A stretch of DNA of 64,000 nt from Vitrella brassicaformis CCMP3155 (taxonomy: Eukaryota; Protista; Chromerida), in assembly GCA_001179505.1 (NCBI GenBank), contig CDMY01000562.1, positions 269,362 through 333,361 on the forward strand, given 5' to 3'. Below the pieces are notes generated by a model. It saw only the letters and a list, made by a program, of their open reading frames with translations, was not told where the DNA came from and did not search any database. Shown in pieces: positions 7,013-46,038 of the stretch (the stretch's first letter is position 1; each line of letters starts with the position of its first letter). Both the position numbers and the translations under genes were made by a program.

Positions 7013-7312
7013 NNNNNNNNNNNNNNNNNNNNNNNNNNNNNNNNNNNNNNNNNNNNNNNNNNNNNNNNNNNNNNNNNNNNNNNNNNNNNNNNNNNNNNNN
7101 NNNNNNNNNNNNNNNNNNNNNNNNNNNNNNNNNNNNNNNNNNNNNNNNNNNNNNNNNNNNNNNNNNNNNNNNNNNNNNNNNNNNNNNNNNNNNNNNNNNN
7201 NNNNNNNNNNNNNNNNNNNNNNNNNNNNNNNNNNNNNNNNNNNNNNNNNNNNNNNNNNNNNNNNNNNNNNNNNNNNNNNNNNNNNNNNNNNNNNNNNNNN
7301 NNNNNNNNNNNN
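7013..7312. other. Assembly gap (300 N) between poly-C tracts
   Basis: Exactly 300 N flanked by C homopolymer on both sides. Confidence 0.98.
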
Positions 7313-13270: not shown

Positions 13271-16200
13271 TCAAGAGACTGAGGACCATTGGGTCTGTCT
13301 GTCTGTCAGTCTGTCTGGCCGACTTTTTTACCGTGCAGCGTAGAGGATTTGTTCCTCTGTGAGGAGGTCCGCTCCCCAGTCGGATCTCTGCTGTGTCTTG
13401 GAGAGGTAGATGCCCAGGTAGCGCTCGGCGAGATGGTCGAGCCTGAAGCCGATCTTGCCCTTGCCGGCCTCTAGCAGCTTGGACGCTATCATGGTGTCCA
13501 GCAGAGGCGTCGAGATGTTGTACCCTACCGTCTTGAAGAACTTGGCCTCGAACTTGCCGTTCTGGAAGACCTTTCTCACGTCGGGGGACGCCAGCATGTC
13601 CCGCACAGGCTGCATCGAGGGGCTGTCGAGGGGCACCTTGAAGGCGTCGATGACGACCACGGGGTGGCCCTCGACGGCCAGCTGGACCAGGCGGATCTTG
13701 CACTCGCTCAGCGGGTCCAGCCCGGTGGTCTCGATGTCCACGCCGACGAGGGAGGCGTTGGTGATGATGTGTGCGGCCTTGTCGAGGGCCGCCGGGCTCT
13801 GGATGTAGTAGTAGTGCGACATGAGGTCGTCGTGGAAGGGCTCGTCCTCGGGCGGACCGAACACCACCAGCTCCTCCGGGTCCACACTCAGGAAGGCTGA
13901 TGTGGTGTTCTGCTGTGCTTGGGGGCCGGCCTCATCGGCACTTTGGTCGATCGTGGGCAGTGGGTGCAGCTGTGTGCCACTCTTGCTGTAGCGCACCTTG
14001 AGAGCCGCAATGATGTCGCCCAACACGGCTGACTTCTTGCGGCCGCCGGACTTGATGTCGAGGCCCTCCTGATCGATGACGGCCCGCATGTCTTGCAGAC
14101 GGGAGGAGGGTGAGAGCGTCAGGGTGTAGCCAGGGATGGTGTGGGTGTCCGTGTGGTGTGGGTGGTCTTGGTCCTCCTTCTTGCCCCTCTTGTAGTGGTG
14201 GATGGTGGCGTGGGCGGACGAGCAGTCAGTGGCCGGTGCGGCGGGGAGCCCCAGGGCCTGGCGGATGTCGATGCAGACTTGCTGCTTGCTGCGGCCGCCC
14301 GTCTTGACGTCAAGGCCGTGCTCCTTGATGAGCACACGCAGCTCCGTCATCTTCATCGAAGACAGCTCCACCTCTGCACCCTCGAACTCATCTGCAATGC
14401 CATCATCACCCTGCCCCTGCTCATCTGCCGTGTCAATGGCGGGCGTCTGCTGTTGCTGCTCGTCGTACACCGTGGTCTCGATGGCCATGGGGGGCATCTC
14501 AGTGACATCCGTGGTCGTGTTTGCCTCGGCCGCCGTCTCCGCCGCTGTGGGGACGGCGAACTGTCGCTCGAGTGCATCCCTGTCGATGGCGATCTCGTCG
14601 GCATGCTTCTCGTCGTCCATCTCGGCGAACCGAATTCGGTCGACAGAGGTGTGTCCGCTTGTGGGCAGGTTGGGGTGGTGGTGGACATGCTGCCATGTGC
14701 TCTGCGACGGCTCCAGCAGCGCCGTGCTGGTGGGGTGCGACGGGCGAGACATCTCCAGCTGCCGATGGGGATGCTTGCGTGACACCTTCATCTGCAGGGT
14801 GTGGGAGGGCATGGCCGGTGCTGGCGACCAGAGGCCTCCCATGTCGTAGGAGCCGCTGCCTCCGTGCTGCTGTGCCCTCGGGACGGTGAGGTCCCGCCGC
14901 GAGCCGACGGAAGACGACGAAGAAGATGAAGATGAAGCGGTTGGTGTGCCGACGAGGCCGAGGCGGCTGCCACGGCCAAACGTCAGCAGAGAGGACGTCT
15001 GCGCGACACCCACTTGACTACCATCATCACTATCATCACTGTCACTGTCATCGGTGTCGGGGTCTTCGTCTTGTGTGACGGCCACTTGGGAAGGCGCGTC
15101 GGAGGGAGGGGGAGGGGGAGGGGCAGAGGAGGCCACCGTCTCGTCTTGGCCGCTCCCATCGTCAGCAGCCGTGGCCGGCCTGCGAGCGGCGGTCTTGGTG
15201 GCCTTGGTGGCCTTTGCTGCTGCTGGGGCTGCCTTCTTGCTGGCTGTGGCGGCCCTTTTTGCTGCTGCTGATGTGGTGGTGGATGCGGCCGTCTTGCGAC
15301 GGGAGGGCGCCTTGGTCGGGTGGACAGCCGCATCAACGGCCTGGGCTGGCACATGCTGCGCCCGCTGCTGCTGCTGCTGCTGCTGGTCACCCTCAGCTTC
15401 ATTGGCAGACTGCTGTTGCTGTTGCTGCATGGACCTGACGTTAGTCATCACGTCACGAGCAGGGCTGAAGGGCGGCGGACGCGCATGCCTGAAGAAACAA
15501 GTGGAGACATCCTGTCTGTCGGTGCCAGGAGGCTCTCATCTCAGTGGCCTACCCACTGCCGCCAGGTGTCATGGATTGCAGGCGAGCGAGCTGGTCGTGG
15601 TGTGCGGCCATGGATGGGCGGCCTTTGGCGGCCGCCTGCACCGCCCGCAGCTCCTCGGGCGACGGCCGCCACGACTCCTTGTTCTGCACATCCAGCTGCT
15701 GAATCGTCAGCGACTCCTTGTCGAACACGTAGCTTACTCGACCCAACTCACCTGTGTGAATGTTTTTAACGGACACATACACACACACACACACACACAC
15801 ATGGTTCATAGTGGGTGCGCATCGCATCGCATTCCGCTGGCTGCGTGACGCTGACCGGCGAATCGGTTCTTTTTGATGTCGACGTAGGGCGCGCTGTTGC
15901 TGGGCCTTTGGAGGATGCACACGTTGTCGGCCTCCTGCGTGCACTTGACGGACCCAAACACACTCGCTATGCCCAGCAGCGTCCCGTCGTCCTGCATCGC
16001 AATGATTGCAACCAAATGCAATCATTGTCCCCAGTCCCCCCCCCCCCCCCCNNNNNNNNNNNNNNNNNNNNNNNNNNNNNNNNNNNNNNNNNNNNNNNNN
16101 NNNNNNNNNNNNNNNNNNNNNNNNNNNNNNNNNNNNNNNNNNNNNNNNNNNNNNNNNNNNNNNNNNNNNNNNNNNNNNNNNNNNNNNNNNNNNNNNNNNN

Positions 16201-19167
16201 NNNNNNNNNNNNNNNNNNNNNNNNNNNNNNNNNNNNNNNNNNNNNNNNNNNNNNNNNNNNNNNNNNNNNNNNNNNNNNNNNNNNNNNNNNNNNNNNNNNN
16301 NNNNNNNNNNNNNNNNNNNNNNNNNNNNNNNNNNNNNNNNNNNNNNNNNNNCCCCCCCCCCCCCCCCAACACACACACACACGGATGGATGGATGACCCA
16401 CCTCTTTCCTGGGATGGACGACGAGAGAGATGTGGACATTTTTGGTTGTGGCGAATCGTCTGAATTTCTCGATGGCTGTGTTTTGGAGGTCCCATCCCTC
16501 GTTGCCCTTGGCCTGGCCGCTGAGCATGAACTGCAGGTTGTCCAACACGATGTGCTTGACGTCCAACACGTATACGGCATAGTCCATCGCGTCCAGCACC
16601 TGATCAATTGGATTGATGCATGCCGGGTGGCATGAGATTGGAGGGGTGGACGGCTCGTTGGCTGACCTGGTCGACGTCAGTGGAGCCATGGAAGCGCAGG
16701 AAGTAGATGGGGAGGCTGCTGAACCGGTTGGCGAAGTAGTCGAAGCGGTCGGGCTGGTGCTCCAGATTGCACCCAGAAAACTGACGCATCATCATCTTGG
16801 CCAACCTGCACACAACACAACACAAAACACCGTATCGTCGTCTCTCTTGTCCGTCTCTCTCTCTTCGCGTGTGTCGTGTCCTATGGGTCCTCCCTCAGTG
16901 CAGTGACCTGAGGTTGTTGATTTCGAATGACCCCCAGAGGGTCGGGACGCCCTGCAGGCAGTAGTCGAGCGACAGCTGGCTGAGCAGGGTGGTCTTGCCG
17001 ATCCCCGTTCCGCCCGTCCATATGCTCAACTCCCCAGGACGGTGCCCCTTGAGCAGCCGATTCAGACCAGGAACCGTCAGGCTCTGCACCCCGTTGACGC
17101 GCCCGGGGTCACGGAGCTCGTCCAACACTTCGCCCCGCAGCTGGCCGAAGTTGAGGATCTGCGAGTGGGGCATCGGACGCGCCACGTCGATCATCTTCCT
17201 CAGGTCATACCTGCACAACAAAGCACAGCACAGCACAACAGCACAACAGCACACAAAGATGAGGTGCGTCAGCCAATGCATTACGTAATGGCTGAGGGTG
17301 GGGCTGTTGTTGCCGCGCATACGCATCAAACGTACCCCTTGATGAGCGCTTCGTTGGCGTCTTTGGGCGGTCTCCTGAGTGCCTCGGTGTCGTCACCAGT
17401 GTCGATGTTGGCGGGGATGTTGCCCGGGCCAGGGTCCTTGACCAGGAAGGTCCGCCCTATCCCCAGCTTGTGCGAAAAGTGCTCCGCGCCCTCCTGCCCG
17501 GGGCCATCGGCATCCATCCACTGATTGATCGACAACAAGCAGCAAGTAAGGAAACACACCCAAACAGCCGATGAGCGACGCGACCCGATGCTCTCCCGCC
17601 CCAATTCACACACTCACTGTGTTGGCTGGCTGACATGCCTGATTTACCAGATAGATGTGTTTGAATCGTTCGAAGAAGGGCAGCAGGGCGACGGGCAGCG
17701 ACCTGGCCCCATTGGGGAGGGAGACGGCGGGGAGCCCGGTGGCCTGGTGGACCGCCATGGCGTCGAACTCGCCCTCGGTGAGGACGATGGAGTCGGCCGT
17801 GTCTGGGATGGTGTGCTCGCCGAAGAGGCCCCACACGCCGCCCTTGGGCTCCAGACGCATGCACGACTTGTCCGACATCGATCGCACCTTGTACCTGGAT
17901 GGACACAGACAGAGGGAGGGCGGGCGGGCGTCTGTTGTGCCCGTCACGGGCCCACCCACGGTCCTCCCACTCGCAGCTACCTGAGGGTGATTTGATGTCC
18001 GTCTTCCACTGTGATCCAGGGGAAGGTCACGCACTCGTGAGTGACGAAGTCGTTCTCATTGTCCTTGGACCGGAACGTGAAGACGCCGGCGCCCACATGG
18101 TACTTGTCCAGCTGACGCCCCCAACCACCCCCACCGACACACAGGCCACGCGAGCGACACATAAGTAAACGGACTGGTGCGTATCCGTGTGTCACTCACT
18201 CACTCACTCAACTCACCACTTCCTTGGTGAGGCCCCGCTCCTTCTGGAGCCGCTCGAGCATCCCCGGGCACACTCTGTCCTCCATCAGCGCTGATGCAAA
18301 CCCCGTCACATTCCCCTGCACACACACACACAAGCACAGCACAGCAAGTGTGTCATCCACCCACTCACACGCCCACGCGCCCACCGACCCACCTGATCAG
18401 GCAGTATGGCAGCGGCATCCCCGATATCCCCCCTATTCAGCACCGCCGCAGCCTGCTGGTCCGGGTTGAGACTCATGAGCACATCTGTCGGCAGGTCGCC
18501 CAGGGCCCGCTTGAGGTCATAGAAGCTGCCCTTGAAGCCGCACCGGTGGCAGAAGCAGTTGCCGTTGTCGCGAAAGACCTCGAGCTTGAAGAGGTTGTCG
18601 GGCTTGTTCCTGTGTGGGGGGCACTTGGGGCAGTACTTGAGGGTGAACCGCTGGGGGCTTGTGTGGTACTCGAGGGCCTTGCGGGTGAGGTAGTCGGACA
18701 CCTCGTGCGGCGGGATGCGGTAGTGGCTCGACACGAACGTCGTGCTGGTCGTCCCCGCACCCTGAACCAGTCAACGGACGGATAGATGGAATGAATGGAC
18801 ACAACGAAACAGACAGACAGACAGATGAATGACCCTCGTATGAGTGAGTTGCCTGCCTGCCTGCCTGCCTCGGCTCACGTATGTCGCCTACGTCATCATC
18901 TGTGGCCTTGGTGGCGGGCGGGTTGTCCAGCACGTGTGGCGGGTACTTGACCTGCTTGGCATGCGGCGCAGACCTCGCCGTCCTCTGTCTTCGCCGCATC
19001 CATGACGGCCTGAACGCGCCATCCGGTTGCTGCAGATGTCCGTGGGGGGGTGCAGGGGGCCGGAGGAAGGCTGGATCTTGCCACAGAGAAGTGAATGCAG
19101 CGTCGTTCGGCAGCTGTGAGCCGCACACTGACGAGATCAGTGCGAGCAGAATCAACAGATCAGCCAT
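11358..19167 (-). CDS. PREX: Plastid DNA replication enzyme: Twinkle-like primase/helicase fused to a family A DNA polymerase with 3'-5' exonuclease (PREX/POM1)
   Basis: Signal peptide MADLLILLALISSVCG plus a Ser/Arg/Pro-rich transit region. Zinc-binding domain CPKC...CHRC; TOPRIM LTEGEFDAMAV...WMDAD; SF4 helicase Walker A GGTGIGKTT, LDNLQF, VVHPRKE, QEADNV, KNRF. Exonuclease VGVDIETTG, QNGKFE, DTMIAS, YAA. PolA motifs A (IADFSQIELR), B (RQLAKAVNFGLIYG) and C (VHDEI). Last exon ...GDSWAEKP-stop, TGA at 11360-11358. Confidence 0.96.
16052..16351. other. Assembly gap (300 N) inside a PREX intron
   Basis: Flanked by poly-C. The exons on either side join as HPRKE|DDGTLLGIASVFGSVKCTQEADNV, which is contiguous in Twinkle-type helicases, so no coding exon appears to be lost. 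Confidence 0.95.
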
Positions 19168-21423: not shown

Positions 21424-24310
21424 CGAGAGGCGGCGGATGGATGGACGGATGTGAGATGTGTGTGGGGGGTGTTGGGGGGGGGGGTGTTGCGTACGTCTCT
21501 TCCGAGGCATCCCGAGCTTGGTTTGCCCCAAGAGTAGAGCTCGCCCTCCTCTGTGACGGCCATGGCGTAGTTGATGCCCGCGTCAACCTTGAACACATGA
21601 CCCTTGATCGGAGCCTGCACACACACACAACCACAACACACACACACACGGGGCTGTCTGTCTGTGTGCCGTCCGTCTTGTGTGTCTGTCTTCTCCTTAG
21701 TGTGTCAGTCACGTTAGCGTATTGCGGGTTGAGTGTGATGGGTTTGGGCTCCAGCCACACCGACCTGCCCCAAAAGTATATCACGCCACTCGCTGACACG
21801 ACACACATGTACAACAAACAACACAACCACACACACGACACAAGACACAAGACACAAGACATCACACAGAAGCCTCCCGCCGTGCAGCTGTGCCGTGAGT
21901 GTCATTGCTCGCTTCGTTCCTCCCGGGTTTGGTTTGCAAGTCCAGTACGTTACCTGAGACTGAGACACAGAAGTCATCCCCCGCCTCCACATCAGCCATC
22001 TGCATGCATCAAGGCGGGCGAGGCGACATGTTGGGGTCTGTCTGTCTGTCTGTGATGGACATGACAGACGCGATGCGTGCCTGTATGCCCTCGAGGACGA
22101 GACTCCTGAGGTGCCTCGGGTACATCTCACACGAGTATATGTCACCAGTCTGAACGATCAATGAAATCAATGACATCAGCAGCCAGCCGTTCCGACCAGG
22201 TCAAGCCACTCACACTTTCTTGCCCTGTGTGTGCCTCTGGCTGGCTGGCTGCCTCTGTGCCCCCCCCCCCCCCCCCCCNNNNNNNNNNNNNNNNNNNNNN
22301 NNNNNNNNNNNNNNNNNNNNNNNNNNNNNNNNNNNNNNNNNNNNNNNNNNNNNNNNNNNNNNNNNNNNNNNNNNNNNNNNNNNNNNNNNNNNNNNNNNNN
22401 NNNNNNNNNNNNNNNNNNNNNNNNNNNNNNNNNNNNNNNNNNNNNNNNNNNNNNNNNNNNNNNNNNNNNNNNNNNNNNNNNNNNNNNNNNNNNNNNNNNN
22501 NNNNNNNNNNNNNNNNNNNNNNNNNNNNNNNNNNNNNNNNNNNNNNNNNNNNNNNNNNNNNNNNNNNNNNNNNNNNNNCCCCCCCCCCCCCCTCACTGAC
22601 CCCGTCGCTTGTCCCGAGCTGCCCCCTGTCGTTGCGGCCCCACACATACAGCTCGCCGGTCTCTAAAGAAACAGACAAACACAACACAACACATCCAAAC
22701 AAAACCTTACTGCGAATGTTGGCCACAGATCAGCCAGCTGGCCGGCCGGCCGTCCGGCTGAGAGGCTCGTCTGTCTCACTCCCTCCCTCACCCACTCACT
22801 TGTGAGTGCGATGGAGTGGTTGGTGCCGGTGGTGAGCTTCAGGATCTCGGGCCTCATGAACAGAGTGCTGAAGTACTCGACCTCCTGCGTCCGTCCATCC
22901 ATCCATCCATCTGTCCATCTGTGTGTGCGTATTACGAGTGGCGTGGCACACACAGATGCGCACCTCGAACTCGAGCTGGTCCGAGTTGTGTCCTCTCCCC
23001 AGTCGGCCGAACTCGCCCTTGCCGCAGCCGTACACCGTGTTGCTCGCTGACGAACGAGCGCACCAAGGAAAGGACACCGCCCAAGGCATTCACGTGCTGA
23101 TCTGATCTGATCGGTCATCGCTGACTGACTGACCCACATGCCTACCTACCTGTGAGTGCAAGGGTCTGCTGATACCCGCAGGTCACGTACTTGACGGGGT
23201 CATCTATCTCGATGAACTGACACCACACCACACCACACCGCCCACGGCACAGCACAACACAACAGAGGCAGGTCCTTTGATTGCAATGCTCACATCAATC
23301 ATATCAGCCCGCCCCGCCCCGCCCCGCCCCGCCCATCCAGGCATCCAGGCACGTGCCTACCTTGCTGACTTCTGTGGGTGTCTCCCTGGTTTTCCTGTCG
23401 CCGTGCCCCAGCCCGTTGCACCCGCTGAAGAAACTGCCACCCCAGCCCCAAGTGAACAAACGACCGTCAGCTGATCGATCAACCAACCACGGCACGGCAC
23501 GGCAACGAACGAGTCATGATCCACACACACACATATACACATACAGCGGCTTCTTTGTTTCTGCCTGCCTGTCTGTCTGTCTGTCTGGATCTGTGACCGA
23601 CCTGCCCTTCCCGCCGACCTACCTGTGAGTGCTGCGGTATGGAAAGCCCCACACGCCAGCTGGACGATAGGCGAAGCCACTGAGATACACACATGTTGAT
23701 TGCAAGAAATGAGTGAGCCATCCGTTGTCTTGTCCTTGTGTTTGTGTGTGTGTGTGTGCGTGTCTGTGTGTCTGTGTGACCGTCTAACTCGACGAGTCCC
23801 GGCTCGTTGTCCTCGTCGGCTTTGGGCCCCCTGGACGGCCTGCCCAGCTGACGATACTTGTTGGCGCCATACGTGTACAGCTTCCCGCTGTCTGCAAACA
23901 GATATAGCACAGTCACAGTCACAGCCACACACGGTCAGTCACCACTGCGATGATTCATTGATCCGCGCCATTCTCTCTGTCTGCCTGCCTGTGTGTCTGG
24001 CTGGCTGTTGGCACGTCTGTGACGTACCGACGAAGGCGGCATGTTCAGATCCCACAGCAATGACGGTAGTGTCGTTGAAGCCCTCTATCCTGGAAGGCGT
24101 CTTGGACGCCTCGGACGTGCTGTTGCCCAGAAACGACGAGTGGCCCGTGCAGCCCCACCGCCACAAGGTCGTCGCGCCCGGACCTCCTGCAGACTGAGGT
24201 GACGATGCTGCTGCTGTCGATGTCGCTGGAGATGATGAGAAGCACCTGCTCGAGGTGCGTGCGGCTGCCAGGGCAGCGCCTCTTCGTCCCACAGTTATCA
24301 GCAGTGCCAT
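21130..24310 (-). CDS. RCC1-repeat beta-propeller protein with a mitochondrial-type presequence (RCC1L/WBSCR16-like)
   Basis: Multiple RCC1 repeats (VGSEHAAFV..SGKLYTYG, LACGAFHTAALT.DGRLFTWG, TTGTNHSIALT.TGELYVWGRNDRGQLG, VDAGINYAMAVTEEGELYSWG, VACGRYRVLAV). The N-terminus MALLITVGRRGAALAAARTSSRCFSS is Arg/Ala/Ser-rich and lacks acidic residues. Confidence 0.88.
22279..22578. other. Assembly gap (300 N) inside an RCC1-gene intron
   Basis: Exactly 300 N flanked by poly-C. Confidence 0.95.
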
Positions 24311-25944: not shown

Positions 25945-27235
25945 TCATTGATATCATAAGGTCCCTATCGTTCTTCCCTGTGAGTCCTCCCTCCCTTCGC
26001 CCCGCCCTGCCCTGCCTGCAGTCCCGTCCGTCCCAACCAACACACACAAACGCGCCCTCACACACAGCACAACACATGGCAAAAAGGGCACCAACAGCGA
26101 CCACCGCATTGCATTCACCGACCGACGTGGTAACAAAAGACCAGCACGGGCAGGCGAAACACGCACATCACACACAGACACCCACAACACCATAACACCA
26201 TACAGAAGGAGTCTCAGACAGGCAGGCAGGCAGAGAAACGCACATAGACCCTGGCCACCCCCACAGACAGCACACATGACAGGTAGGGGCCAAAAACAAA
26301 ACAATCCCGGCCCGGCCCGGCAACAGAAACCGCATCGGATAAAAATTCATGCAGTGGCGAGTGAGTGGAAGGTAACAAACAAGACAGCCAAACCAAAACA
26401 AGATAAACAGAACGAGCCCCCTCTTCCCGGCCCAACTGGTGATCAAAATCGTCACCACCCCATCGTGTGAATCCACCCCCTCCACCCTGGGAGCCGAGCC
26501 TCCCACGGATGACGGATTCGTATCAAACTCATGCAGACAGACAGACACAGCCATCACACACGCACATACACACACACACCTCACTGATGTCACCTCACCG
26601 GCCGACCCAGCGCTAAAGCGCAAGGAAGGAAAAGGAAAGCCCCCACACCCGCCCGCCCGGCCGCACGCAAGCCAGACGGGCAGGTATGTCAGAATCATTT
26701 GTACAGGATCATGTCTGACTCACTCACTGAGGGCGGCTTGGCTTCTCGTCAGTCATGTCGGCCGTATCAATCAATAAAGCGTATCAATCAATTGGGAAGG
26801 AAGGAACCAGCGCCGCCCTCGCACGTAGACAGGTATGTATGTATGTAAGCACACCATTCACCACAGCACAGCATAGCACAGCACACCACGCCACGCCACC
26901 ACAGGCATCACGCACACGCAGTCACGCACACACAGGAACGCAAAACAGGTGAATGCACGGGAAAAACTCGCCTGTTTGTTTCGTTCATTCTTCTAGACAT
27001 CGATCCACCTCCCTGTCTGTCTGTCTGTCTGTCTCTATGCACATGCGCTCATCCATCGGTGGGTGGATGGATGGATGGATGGATGGAGAGCGGCGTCTTC
27101 TCCGCATCGAATCGACGCAGACAGACAAAACACCTCCCCGACAGTCAGGCAATGAGCTACAGGCAATGGGCTACAGTCTACCTGAGCTTCCCCCCCATGG
27201 ACAGCCCTATCACACTCATGGACGCACGCAATATA

Positions 27236-30200
27236 TCACACAGCCGTGCCAGCCTTCTTGTCCTCGAGCGCAGCCACGTCACGCGCCTGCACACACCACA
27301 CACACACACACACACACATACGTCCGTCCACCCATCTGCCCCATGGGTCGGATCCCTTCCATCCGCAGTACAGAACGTACCTTCTTCCGTCGCTGCAGCC
27401 ATCGGTAGAGGGGCTTGGGTCCCAGCTCGGCCCCCGCCACGGTGAGGACGGCCCAGCCGAGCGCGTAGAAGTACATCCACCAGGAGAGCGTCACTGTCGA
27501 GAAGACGTAGTTGACGCCGGGGATGAGGGTGATGAGGATGGCGAGGGCCGCCGAGGTGCCGCATGCGATGTGCAGCCACTTGTTGCGGTTGAAGACGGCG
27601 AAGATGGGCAACCACGACCGGACCGTGTAGCCACGCGGAATCTCGCAGAACACCGCCGTGAGGAACGAGATCGTCCGGGCGCGCTGCGTGCCGCGCACCA
27701 CACACGTGTACACGGCGTCCTGCACACACAGAGACCGATGATGCGTGTGAGGGAGGCAGGATGGCATGAGTGTGTCTGTGTGGGTGGGTGAGTGTGTGTA
27801 TGCGTGTGCGTGTATGGTCGTACGTCGTAGAATTCCTTGGTCGCGAGGTTCTGAGGCTTGGCCCACTGGCCGGGCTGGCGGGGCTTGTCGTCGTCGTTGT
27901 AGAGAGGCTCGCTGTTTGAGTTTTCATACTAACACATCGCATGCACCAGACAGACAGACAGACAGACGCACAATAAGCATGTGTAGTTTCGGCGTGCGTG
28001 TGTCTTGCGTCAGTACCTTTGTGTATGCCTCTGCGACTTGGGGCACATCCTCGGGCCGGAGGGTGCCGGGCTCGAGGGTGCCAATGTAGGCGCGGTCCAG
28101 GTGCTTGAGGGTCGAGTCGTTGGGGTCATAGTAGTCGATGTCAATCTGATCCACACAAACCAACCACACACCGAACGAACCAAACCACATCACATCCGTC
28201 CATGCGCTCGCCGCCCCGTGTCTGTCACACACCTGCCATCCCTTGTCCCAGGTGAACTCCCGGCACTCGCAGAAGTACGGCCAGGCGAAGTCATCGCCAT
28301 CGACCTTATAGGTGCGGCACGGCTCCGTCTGCACACTGTCGGATGTGACATAGCCGGTGTTGAGGTACATGGCGAAGGCCAGCGACAGCAGCACTGCGCA
28401 CGTCTGGATGACGGCATGCGGCAGGATGGCGAAGAAGGCGAAGGGGCGGGTGATGATGGACGCCGTCTTCTTGCGGGGCGGCTGCTTCATGATGTCCTCG
28501 TCGGCAGGCTCCACGGCCAGCGCCACTGCGGGCGGCCCGTTGCTGATGACATTGATGAACAAAATCTGACGGAAGGAAAGACACGGACAGTGGGTGAGGG
28601 TGAGTCGAGGGAAATCGCATCGCATTGTTGGTTTGTCTGACTTGACTCACCTGGAGGGCCTCGAGTGGCAGCGGCAGCCTGATGAGGATTGAGATGGTGA
28701 GGTATACGATCTGGCCGATGCAGCAGCCCAGCAGGAAGGTGACGAACTTCTGGATGTTGGCGTAGATCTTCCGGCCCTCCTCGCACGCAGCCACGATCGT
28801 CACGAAATTGTCGTCCAGCAACACCATGTCGGACGCGCCCTTGGCCACGTCTGTGCCTGCGATGCCCATCGCCGTACCGATGTCGGCAGCCTACATCACA
28901 TTTCACACACAAGATCGATGGATGGATGGATGGATGGATGTGCTGTGGGTGTGCTGTGGGTGTGGTCCGTACCTTGAGTGCAGGTGCGTCGTTGACACCG
29001 TCGCCGGTCATGGCGACCACGCCGCCCTGCCGCTGCAGTGACCGCACGATGGCCATCTTGTCCTCGGGCTGGGCGCGGGAGAACACATTCACCCTACATA
29101 ACACAGACACAACAGACAGACAGACGGATGACCATACACACCTCTCTCTCAGTCGTCAGCTGGCTGGCTGCACATGCTGACCTGGAGGTGATCTCGTCCA
29201 GTGCGCCTTCCTCGACGTGCTCGCCGGTCTCCTTGTCCCTCAGCTCCTCGCACATGATGGCCCCCTCGGTGCCCTGCTCGTGCTTCAAGATGCCGATCTC
29301 GCGGGCAATGGCCGAGGCCGTGATCTTCTGGTCTCCAGTGATCATGATGACCCGCACACCGGCACCGTTGCACTCTTCGATGGCGTCACGGACGCCTGTG
29401 CGTGGGGGGTCGACGGACCCGAAGAGGCCCATGAGGGCGAGGGGCTGGCTGGGGTGGGGGGACTGCTTGGACGAAGGGAGGGGCGTGCCGCGGCCCAGGA
29501 TGGCGTCCAGTCGGACGTCGGCCGTGTCGAGGGTGGAGAGAAGCGAGACGTCCTCGGTGCTCAGAGGGCGGACGGCCAAAGCCAGCACACGAAGGGCGTT
29601 CTGTTGGTGGCACACAGTCAGAGCAGCCATATGAATGAGGCGCGCTGATGGACCTCTCTCTCTCTCTCTGTGCAGAGAGGTCAGACCTTGGCCATGTCGT
29701 TGTTGACGCGCTCGATGTCGGTGCGCTGCTGGTCTTTGAGAGTATGCTGAGAGGCGAGGCGGTAGGTGGGGTTGCCCTCCTTGTCGGTGCCGTCCTGCGG
29801 GCAGCTGCCCACGTGGGGCATCACCCTGTCAGGCCCACCCTTGATGATGGCCACGTGCGTCATCGAGCTGTCCGGCAGAGACATGCCCTCAAACACACCT
29901 GATCGACCGACCACGGCACACAGAACAAGAGGACAAAGACGACAGTGCACGCAGCAGAGGGCGCAGGGCAGTGGTTTGCTCCTGGTTGGTTTGTGTACCG
30001 GGTGTGTGCAGCTGGTGGATGGTGACCATCATCTTGCGTGAGCTGTTGAAGGGCACCTCGAGGGCGTTGATGCGGAGGTACTTGGCCTGGTGGTGAGTCA
30101 CGCTCGCGAACTGACCGTCCTCCTCGCCGATGCCGATGCGCGCCTTGGCCGCAGCAACCACCAGAGCACCTGACATCACAGAGACCGAGACGTGATCACC

Positions 30201-32802
30201 ACACCACCGTGCCACCCCGTCTGTGTCTTCTCATGTGTCGCACCTTCGCTCATGTTTCCTTCGGTGACCCATCTGCCGTCCTCGACCATCTTGAGCTGGG
30301 TGCCGTAGCAGTTGAGGCTGGCGGCCATCATGATGGTGCGCACCTTGCCCTTGCCGTTCACGGGGTTGCCGTGGTCACGCACCAGCCCGCCGTTTTCGAA
30401 GTCGTACCACTTGCCCGCATCCCACTTGGCCATGATGGCCTCCTTGGCGCCGTCCTTGCGCAGCTCGGAGGCCGCGAAGATGCCGCCGTTGGGGTGGAAC
30501 CCCTTGGTGGGGAAGAAGGAGAACTCCTCGGTGGGCGGGGCGTCTGGTGTGGCCGGGTCTTCGGACTCGCTGACGGCGTGCAGGGTGACGGCCGTCATCT
30601 TGCCCTCGGTCAGGGTGCCGGTCTTGTCACTGCACACGACGGTGCAAGAGCCCAGCGTCTCGACTGCAGGCAGCTTGCGCACCTGGTGGCAATACATTCA
30701 CACAACACACGAGACACACAGGGATGAGATCAGAGGGGTCGTGTGGCTGGCTAGGTTGACCACCCGCTGCAGTGCACTGCAGCGTAGCGTACCTGTGCCT
30801 GTCGCTTGACCATGGCGCCGCAGCCGAGTGAGAGGCAGATGGTGACGACCATGGGGAGGCCCTCTGGGATGGCCGAGACGGCGAAGCCGACGGCAACCAT
30901 GAGAATCGAGAAGAACCGGCCGTCCTCGGGGTGCGATGGGTCACGGTACCCTGTCGTGATGGCCACCACGATGATCAGCGCTGCACACACACACCACACA
31001 CAGACAGAGAGGGACACGTGAGACAAATGTGTCGTGTGGGCTTGTGTGTGTGGTGTGAGGGCGTACCAAGGAAGGCGATGGCGATGGCGCCCTGGATGAG
31101 GCCGAACTTGTTGAGGGACTTCTGCAGGGGCGTCAGCTGCTCGCTCTGGCTCGCCTGCACACTCACAGCACATCACAACCAACCAACAGAATGAATGGCC
31201 ACGTTCATGTGGGTGTGCTGGTGGGTGGTTCGTTGGCTGGGTGTGGGGTGTATGGTATGGCGCTGGTAGTACCTACCGCCTTGAGGTGCTGGGCGATGAT
31301 GCCGACTTGGGTGTGCATACCGGTGGCCACCTGCGCAGCGCACAGACGAGACGAACAGACAGGCAGACACATGTGTCGATGGTGGGGGTGTGGTGTGGTG
31401 TGAGGTGTGTGTGTCCACCGTACCACGAGGCCTCTGCCGGATCCGTTGGTGACGGATGTGGAGGCGAAGCACATGTTCTTGGCAAAGGCCTCCTTGGCCT
31501 CCTCACCGTTCACCTTGACCTGCTTCCGGATGTCCTCACCTGCACACACAGCAGTCATATGGATGGATGGATGGATGGATTTGTGGCTCTGTCCGTGTGC
31601 GTGTGAGAGAGAGAGTGGGAGGGGGCGTTTACTTTCGCCAGTGAGCAGGGCCTCGTTGGAGAGGAGCTCGTTGACGTCGATGAGACGGATGTCGGCAGGC
31701 ACACGGTCGCCGATGGACAGCAACACCAGGTCACCGGGGACCAACTCAGTCGCCTCAATCAGCTCCTCAGCACCATTGCGGATCACCTGGTGCGTCAGAC
31801 ATGGCCCACACACAACCACATACAGGCGTCTCGTCTCATGTGCTGTGCTGTGGGTGTGGTGAGAATCTTTCTCTGTCTGTCTCTGCTGACCCACCTTGCA
31901 TTTGGGTGCGGCCATGCTGGCCAGTTTGGCGAGTGCGTCGCTGGCGGATTTCTCCATGTAGGTGGCCAGTGATGCGTTCCAGAGGGTGATGACGAGCACC
32001 GCCACGCCCACGACGACCTTGCCGATGCTCAGGGAGACGATGGCCGCCACAACCAGCAAAATCATCACCGGCGACTTGTACTGCATCAGGAACAACCACC
32101 TGTCACACATCACACATGTTTCAGAGAGGGAGACAGAGGGAGACACTCAGTCGACCATCCCATCCGCACACAACACATGCCCCCCGGCCGACTGACTGAC
32201 CAGGCGGAGACGGTGCCCTCCTTCTCGAGAGCGTTGTCGCCCCACTCGTGTCTCGCCTCGATGACCCGCTCGGAGGTGAGTCCCTTGATGCAGCTGCTCT
32301 TGAGGTCCTTGGCGAGCTGCTCGGACGAGGCGCTGGCCCACTTGTTTGCGCCCTGGAAGTGCTCATACTCGTCGTGGGCCTCCTCCACCACGTGCTTGAA
32401 TTCCTCCTGGTTCTTGGAGCGGGCCGCCTGGATGCGGTCCTCCAGAGGCGGCTCGTACAGGTGACCCACCGCCTCGTCCGTGTAGGACGTCGCACGACCG
32501 AAGAACTGCTCCAACCTGCATCGAATCGACAGGGACAAGACATAACACAACAGCACACAGTCTCTCACACCCGCAGAGAGAGGATGCACACGCGCACCCC
32601 TCACAGATCTCTCTCTGTCTGGTTCCGCCTGCCCTTCTGGATGCATGTCGTGTGTGTGTGCGTGAGGTCTCGCTGACTGACAGACTGACCGTTCGCCCAT
32701 GTGCGGGTGACTCGTCCCGGGGCCGTGTCCGCGGTGGACATTGAGCAGGTTGGGTGAGCGATGCGAGTGATGGGGGGACCGGGACTTGAGCTTTTCACTC
32801 AT
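27236..32802 (-). CDS. Type II P-type cation ATPase, ATP4-like paralogue with altered ion-binding site
   Basis: [71 protein letters not shown] and LEALQ|ILFIN motifs. The [11 protein letters not shown] and [18 protein letters not shown] strings match apicomplexan ATP4 as I recall it. Last exon [16 protein letters not shown]-stop. Confidence 0.92.
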
Positions 32803-45738: not shown

Positions 45739-46038
45739 NNNNNNNNNNNNNNNNNNNNNNNNNNNNNNNNNNNNNNNNNNNNNNNNNNNNNNNNNNNNNN
45801 NNNNNNNNNNNNNNNNNNNNNNNNNNNNNNNNNNNNNNNNNNNNNNNNNNNNNNNNNNNNNNNNNNNNNNNNNNNNNNNNNNNNNNNNNNNNNNNNNNNN
45901 NNNNNNNNNNNNNNNNNNNNNNNNNNNNNNNNNNNNNNNNNNNNNNNNNNNNNNNNNNNNNNNNNNNNNNNNNNNNNNNNNNNNNNNNNNNNNNNNNNNN
46001 NNNNNNNNNNNNNNNNNNNNNNNNNNNNNNNNNNNNNN
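45739..46038. other. Assembly gap (300 N), intergenic, G-rich flanks
   Basis: Exactly 300 N. Confidence 0.95.

Follow-up and report, generated by a model that had tools for sequence, protein, structure and literature searches.

A gene of the alga Vitrella brassicaformis CCMP3155 encodes a divergent paralogue of the Na+ pump ATP4, a P-type ATPase, in which otherwise invariant ion-site residues of transmembrane helices 5 and 6 (TM5 and TM6, or M5 and M6) have been replaced, with the loss of two carboxylates, while the catalytic core is intact. The gene is found on the minus strand of a 64,000-nucleotide stretch of contig CDMY01000562.1 (positions 269,362 to 333,361; assembly GCA_001179505.1), which we call the window. 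Its product, the 1263-amino-acid protein P0001, is labelled in the database as an unnamed protein product; the search that identified it used the TM8-10 exon as query against 1.84 billion representative proteins, and its exons map exactly onto the window DNA. All full-length analyses rest on this database entry and not on a separately joined spliced model. We see about an even chance that P0001 works as a cation pump whose site is less charged, with an altered stoichiometry or proton coupling.

The Na+ ion in PfATP4 is coordinated by E409, E934, D963 and E1176, together with N959 and a TM4 backbone carbonyl, and the SERCA equivalents of these side chains are E309, E771, D800, E908 and N796, respectively (PMC11745376); every coordinating PfATP4 side chain is conserved with SERCA (cryo-EM paper, PMC12537908). 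P0001 reads GCCIGQ in M5 in place of the usual GTNIGE and ISNG in M6 in place of the usual [ST]DG. Set against PfATP4 (9n10_A), it carries T930C, N931C, E934Q and D963N and keeps N959 and E1176. Of the residues that make up a SERCA-like Na+ site (Glu in TM4, Asn and Glu in TM5, Asn and Asp in TM6, Glu in TM8) P0001 retains only the Glu of TM4, the Asn of TM6 and the Glu of TM8. An earlier note on this DNA, made from its letters alone, had proposed an ATP4-like pump with four ion-site substitutions. N to C, E to Q and D to N stand, each unique against 88 of 88 other sequences, and with them the loss of two carboxylates, the TM5 Glu (E934Q) and the TM6 Asp (D963N). T to S does not: the residue at the T962 position of PfATP4 is Ser in P0001 and also in most ATP4s, so that Ser is the common state of the clade.

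In an alignment of 131 full-length relatives the TM5 motif T-N-[IV]-G-E and the TM6 motif [ST]-D-G are near-invariant, and C-C-I-G-Q with S-N-G occurs in P0001 alone. T930, N931, E934 and D963 are each present in 88/88 of the other myzozoan ATP4s, and so the substitutions are not common in ordinary ATP4 orthologues. About 40 further oomycete and bacterial P2 relatives have the M6 Asp without exception; of the alignment's oomycete and more distantly related sequences, only a few eugregarines and distant outliers have lost it. A Cys before the TM5 Asn is frequent in further bacterial P2 sequences. A word search with residues 880-1010 of P0001, covering 5.8 billion clusters, gave 3,963 length-matched candidates (about 0.55-1.75 times the query length), the closest of them 66% identical, and no other protein among these candidates carried the M5/M6 motif. 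Judged by the alignment, the pattern of replaced invariant residues is far beyond chance. We found no description of this ion site in the literature covered, which did not extend to Lehane et al. 2019 (J Biol Chem) or the supplement of PMC11745376.

The features of the gene, in window coordinates, are as follows.

32802-27239, minus strand: coding region of the divergent ATP4 paralogue P0001, with 19 exons and 18 introns; TGA stop at 27236-27238.
31892..32098, minus strand: TM1-TM2 exon; V173 at 32009-32011, a position that is Glu or Asp in 83/83 of the other clade members.
31631..31783, minus strand: exon with the actuator-domain TGES motif; T260 at 31640-31642; Pfam E1-E2_ATPase, 2.3e-14.
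31068..31154, minus strand: TM3 exon; LNKFGLIQG where the clade has LNKLGGxIG, with F336, L338 and Q340 at clade-invariant columns.
30787..30981, minus strand: TM4 exon with the IPEGLP motif; E388 (30862-30864) retained; PfATP4 alignment, 3.5e-15.
30239..30676, minus strand: exon with the DKTGT phosphorylation motif and part of the N domain; D430 at 30626-30628.
28973..29092, minus strand: exon with the GDGVND hinge motif, at residue 855; Pfam Hydrolase, 5.2e-06.
28651..28890, minus strand: TM5 exon; M5 motif at 28699-28737, with C921, C922 and Q925.
28723-28725, 28720-28722 and 28711-28713, minus strand: TM5 codons of C921, C922 and Q925, respectively.
28233..28565, minus strand: exon for TM6 and TM7 that also begins the extracellular loop; M6 motif at 28518-28565, with N950 retained, S953 and N954.
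28551-28553, 28542-28544 and 28539-28541, minus strand: TM6 codons of N950, S953 and N954, respectively.
27381..27719, minus strand: TM8-TM10 exon; E1160 (27642-27644) retained; A1231 at 27429-27431.

The TM5 and TM6 exons are separated by an 85-base GT..AG intron (28566-28650). The intervals given earlier for the two motifs, 28711-28725 and 28536-28560, do cover the core residues, and the full motifs extend beyond them on both sides. The claim of an intact catalytic core holds, since all of the signature motifs are present: PEGL (E388), TGES (260), DKTGT (430), GDGVND (855) and VFCEIPRGY in M8 (E1160).

Several lines of evidence place P0001 in the ATP4 family, in agreement with its first description as ATP4-like. 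PfATP4 (9n10_A) was the best match in the PDB for each exon tested (TM5, 2e-28; TM6-7, 3e-19; TM8-10, 4e-29; TM4, 3.5e-15), with SPCA next best and SPCA, Na,K-ATPase and SERCA all well behind. An AlphaFold2 model of residues 50-1249 (mean predicted local distance difference test score, pLDDT, 84.5; predicted template-modelling score, pTM, 0.75) gave 9n10_A again as its top Foldseek match (E 2.3e-76; template-modelling score 0.88 by target; root-mean-square deviation 4.0), and the modelled fold is PfATP4-like, including the TM7-TM8 extracellular domain. The expected Pfam domains were found on the exons. Membership of the P-type (HAD-IC) ATPases is clear from DKTGT, TGES and GDGVND and from a TIGR01494 score of 293 bits against a cut-off of 62.3. 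At the level of P2 subfamilies no NCBIfam model reached its cut-off for P0001, for the canonical Vitrella copy (P0103) or for the PfATP4-like P0122. P0001 fell short of the ENA-type model TIGR01523 (396.9 bits against 645.05) and of the SPCA/PMR1-type model TIGR01522 (553 bits against 798), and the TM6 Asp, replaced by Asn, also departs from the latter type. ATP4 is often filed under the fungal ENA model; the best sub-threshold P2 score of all three proteins was with the PMR1-type Ca2+ model and not with the fungal ENA model. These subfamily failures agree with published remarks that the myzozoan ATP4s form a separate P2 subgroup (PMC12537908, PMC11745376). In a tree of 31 sequences (IQ-TREE, LG+C20+F+G4, oomycete outgroup) P0001 fell inside the myzozoan ATP4 clade of apicomplexan, chromerid and dinoflagellate-like sequences with 100/100 support, and a larger quick tree with a bacterial outgroup agreed, giving the clade 99 in the Shimodaira-Hasegawa-like approximate likelihood ratio test (SH-aLRT). 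P0001 is, by tree and predicted fold, a pump of the ATP4 clade.

The suggestion that P0001 is a paralogue is upheld because a canonical ATP4 coexists with it in the same genome, on another contig (CDMY01000973). That protein, P0103, is 1257 amino acids long and 52% identical to P0001, and it has TNIGE, SDG and all of the other canonical residues. Among the hits recovered, Chromera velia has the canonical copy only. In the 31-sequence tree P0001 lies within the chromerid-plus-apicomplexan group (88/95); P0103 groups with the Apicomplexa (95/94), and P0001 and the Chromera ATP4 branch below without a resolved order. A sister relationship of the two Vitrella proteins, which would make the duplication specific to Vitrella, was not rejected by an approximately unbiased (AU) test (p 0.157). 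The end branch of P0001 measures 0.83 and that of the Chromera ATP4 0.74. There are 18 introns in the P0001 gene and 26 in the P0103 gene (L001:3001-9771 on its contig), and 7 of the 18 P0001 positions are shared; so few common positions hint, without being decisive, at an old split of the two copies. The duplication is probably not recent. The P0103 gene has no counterpart of the intron that separates the TM5 and TM6 codons in the P0001 gene.

The remodelling of the membrane domain is wider than the earlier note had it, extending to TM3, to L958I, to M1177I and A1180G, to a TM2 acid replaced by Val and to D1247A. Among the 225 columns with a conservation of 95% or more across the clade, P0001 departs from the conserved state at 14; the median protein does so at one, P0103 at one and the Chromera ATP4 at seven. 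In PfATP4 numbering the deviations are:

TM3: L357F, G359L, I361Q.
TM5: T930C, N931C, E934Q.
TM6: L958I, D963N.
TM8: M1177I, A1180G.
TM9-10: T1210A, D1247A.
N domain: S555C, A654G.

Ten of the 14 are thus in TM3, TM5, TM6 and TM8. G358 of PfATP4 adjoins the Na+ site (cryo-EM paper, PMC12537908), and the TM3 changes of P0001 (F336, L338 and Q340) flank the equivalent Gly. A census of charge in the membrane helices showed that four acids conserved in more than 90% of the clade are lost in P0001, namely the Glu/Asp at the start of TM2 (now Val), E934 (Gln), D963 (Asn) and D1247 (Ala; A1231 in P0001, Asp in 86/88 clade members), and that no acidic or basic residue has been gained. The Chromera velia ATP4 (P0104) shares two minor states with P0001: M1177I, and a TM7 Gln where 68/88 have Glu.

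We compared the contigs of four public runs (X4, X8, X9 and X14) with the gene over window positions 27200-32600. The independent DNA run X4 gave the unspliced gene sequence with no differences. X8 and X9 are 2015 runs whose kind is not on record, and we read them as RNA because their contigs are spliced; these contigs are identical to the exon DNA. At all 14 of the junctions listed from the spliced contigs of X8, X9 and X14 the ends are GT..AG; 15 further joints lie outside the listing. Run X14, a sediment metatranscriptome, holds spliced contigs from a relative that has diverged by about 3% and yet keeps the M5/M6 motif: of 40 listed differences between the two genes 29 are synonymous and 11 non-synonymous, and the three in the M5/M6 stretch (28515, 28527 and 28705) are all at synonymous third positions. 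This pattern of substitution indicates that the motif is conserved in a natural population and that the gene is under purifying selection. The codons are confirmed by these runs, the same sequence having been recovered from independent DNA and from spliced RNA-type data of several studies, and an assembly, annotation or sequencing artefact, which had virtually no chance of being the explanation, is refuted by the comparison. The P0001 gene is real, transcribed and selectively maintained. At about 97% identity the gene was also met in marine sediment metagenomes and metatranscriptomes (runs X12, X14, X15 and X17-X20), spliced in the RNA data, which means that such sediments harbour a Vitrella-like organism with active transcription.

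We take a working pump as the default reading, given an undamaged engine and a gene under constraint. With its actuator (A), phosphorylation (P) and nucleotide-binding (N) domains and all of their signature motifs in place, the protein should still cycle through phosphorylated states. The cation site has been rebuilt around two carboxylates, the TM4 and TM8 Glu, instead of four, with amide, hydroxyl and thiol ligands in addition, and, because acids have been lost and no new acid or base has appeared in the membrane helices, it carries about half of the negative charge. Gln and Asn would mimic a permanently protonated Glu and Asp. The pump would then export a monovalent cation, most plausibly Na+, and move fewer ions per cycle or have its proton counter-transport reduced or lost; behaviour of this kind would be well matched to the alkaline, Na+-rich sea water in which the alga lives. 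We infer ion transport, the identity of the ion and the stoichiometry from sequence.

The proposed mechanism is modelled on P2 pumps that have a single site or a reduced stoichiometry, and on ENA. The single-site pumps SPCA and PMCA, and the gastric H,K-ATPase and the brine-shrimp Na,K-ATPase alpha2KK with their reduced stoichiometries, have site residues removed or neutralised and move fewer ions per ATP. P0001 resembles them in principle; they differ from it in that their TM6 Asp is kept, and in several of them an inserted Lys plays the part of a built-in cation, whereas P0001 has Asn and has gained no basic residue. From PfATP4, which it resembles in its domain order, its large TM7-TM8 extracellular loop, all of its catalytic motifs and its TM4 Glu, TM6 Asn and TM8 Glu, P0001 differs in being without two of the four coordinating carboxylates (E934Q, D963N) and without the TM5 Asn (N931C), and in having changed the TM2 acid and D1247 as well as otherwise invariant pocket residues of TM3, TM6 and TM8. 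Within the ATP4 clade a parallel is found in the eugregarines Gregarina niphandrodes, Gregarina sp. Poly1 and Blabericola, whose homologues have lost the TM6 Asp independently; unlike P0001 they retain the TM5 Asn and Glu. Their TM6 readings are NLMT-SLPA, NLATGGLPA and NMATGSGPA (P0021, P0148, P0178 and P0179, including one Logan contig), and one copy was recovered per species, except for a second, very long-branched Blabericola sequence (P0051). The eugregarines thus provide, within the ATP4 clade, an independent loss of a supposedly essential ligand.

In P0001, as in the ENA pumps (P2D Na+/K+ efflux ATPases of fungi and bryophytes), the place of the TM5 Glu holds Gln and that of the TM6 Asp an uncharged residue. 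The earlier note had stated that fungal ENA pumps do without some of the acids, and this is true of NcENA1, whose motifs are IPASL in TM4, ENIAQ in TM5 and TSGLPD in TM6, so that the TM5 Glu is represented by Gln and the TM6 Asp by Ser; mutagenesis has shown that its E818, N819, Q822, T855, D860 and D892 matter for Na+ efflux (PMC10779151). ENA pumps, with IPAS, are without the TM4 Glu that P0001 retains, and they form a separate clade. P0001 has IPEG, CCIGQ and SNGPPA and no TM7 acid, and the Gln alone is held in common. No solved ENA structure was found in the copy of the PDB searched.

Several observations weigh against a working low-charge pump. Where NcENA1 has E818, D860 and D892, P0001 shows Cys, Ala and no acid in TM7, respectively; as judged from the motifs, the ENA precedent is imperfect, since the neutral positions are shared without the compensating acids. 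The contigs do not yield a level of expression, and the Cys pair hints at a different chemistry. In SERCA, E771Q and D800N abolish Ca2+ transport. PfATP4 E409I and E1176I fail to complement, although those residues are not the ones changed in P0001. These mutants leave some likelihood of a dead or uncoupled site, and we put at roughly one in six or seven the likelihood that P0001 is a transport-incompetent or uncoupled ATPase, in which the neutral TM5 and TM6 residues mimic an occupied or protonated site and the protein hydrolyses ATP without transport, acts as a regulator or sensor, or is heading for loss. Both residues are invariant in all other clade members, the M6 Asp in further P2 relatives as well, and neutralisation of the equivalent carboxylates uncouples or abolishes transport in H,K- and Ca-ATPases. 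Such a protein would sit uneasily with a gene that has no frame disruptions and is expressed and spliced, that shows an excess of synonymous changes against its diverged relative, all of those in TM5 and TM6 among them, and whose membrane domain is well conserved and confidently modelled; the eugregarine homologues, moreover, are retained copies without the M6 Asp.

A switch of substrate is likewise improbable, though worth keeping in mind: a pocket with two TM5 Cys, a Gln, an Asn, a new TM3 Gln and two carboxylates might bind a ligand other than Na+/K+, such as NH4+, a softer metal ion or only protons. No other member of the clade has N931C, which, with T930C and a conserved TM8 Cys, would bring thiols near the site; acids are gone at the TM2 mouth and in TM10, and so many coordinated changes of the pocket suggest a new ligand rather than simple tuning. 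Pointing the other way, a Cys precedes the TM5 Asn in many bacterial P2 pumps with a normal site, the TM4 Glu, TM6 Asn and TM8 Glu are still present, Pfam finds no metal-binding domains in the termini, and we know of no P2-type pump with thiol ligands. Taken more broadly, an ATP4-lineage pump with a changed class of substrate (not Na+, K+ or Ca2+ but a soft metal, NH4+ or another cation), or one that might pump Na+ electrogenically without proton return, seems to us an unlikely outcome too. An ordinary ATP4 duplicate with an unchanged Na+/H+ function, drifting within tolerance as a redundant copy, is an outside chance. Its overall divergence is moderate, as its end branch compared with that of the Chromera ATP4 indicates, and ENA pumps function with Gln and Ser at these positions; but the changes fall exactly on the assigned Na+-coordinating residues and their neighbours, P0001 departs from invariant columns 14 times and P0103 once, and the drift of a redundant copy is inconsistent with the purifying selection seen.

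ATP4 is a leading target of antimalarial drugs, and elsewhere among apicomplexans, chromerids and the planktonic relatives of these groups its ion site has stayed fixed. P0001 and P0103 form a natural pair for comparison within one harmless alga, and from them it could be learnt what residues govern selectivity for Na+, stoichiometry and the coupling to protons in a little-understood P2 subgroup; the finding also touches on the way in which marine algae expel Na+ when the pH is alkaline. If a change of substrate or electrogenic Na+ pumping were to prove true, the pair would be a natural experiment on the rebuilding of the ion and inhibitor pocket of a drug target. The finding, as read from sequence, is limited to a single algal lineage and its weight depends on the transport behaviour of the protein.

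Two introns of the gene contain the microsatellites (TCTG)n and (GA)n, at 27947-27967 and 29654-29671, where the X4 DNA contigs show 20-40-fold spikes of depth. An apparent joint of 1686 bases in X4 (27967 to 29654) is explained by these repeats and is no rearrangement. Elsewhere in the window there are four assembly gaps of exactly 300 N, at 7013-7312, 16052-16351, 22279-22578 and 45739-46038, none of them within the ATPase gene.

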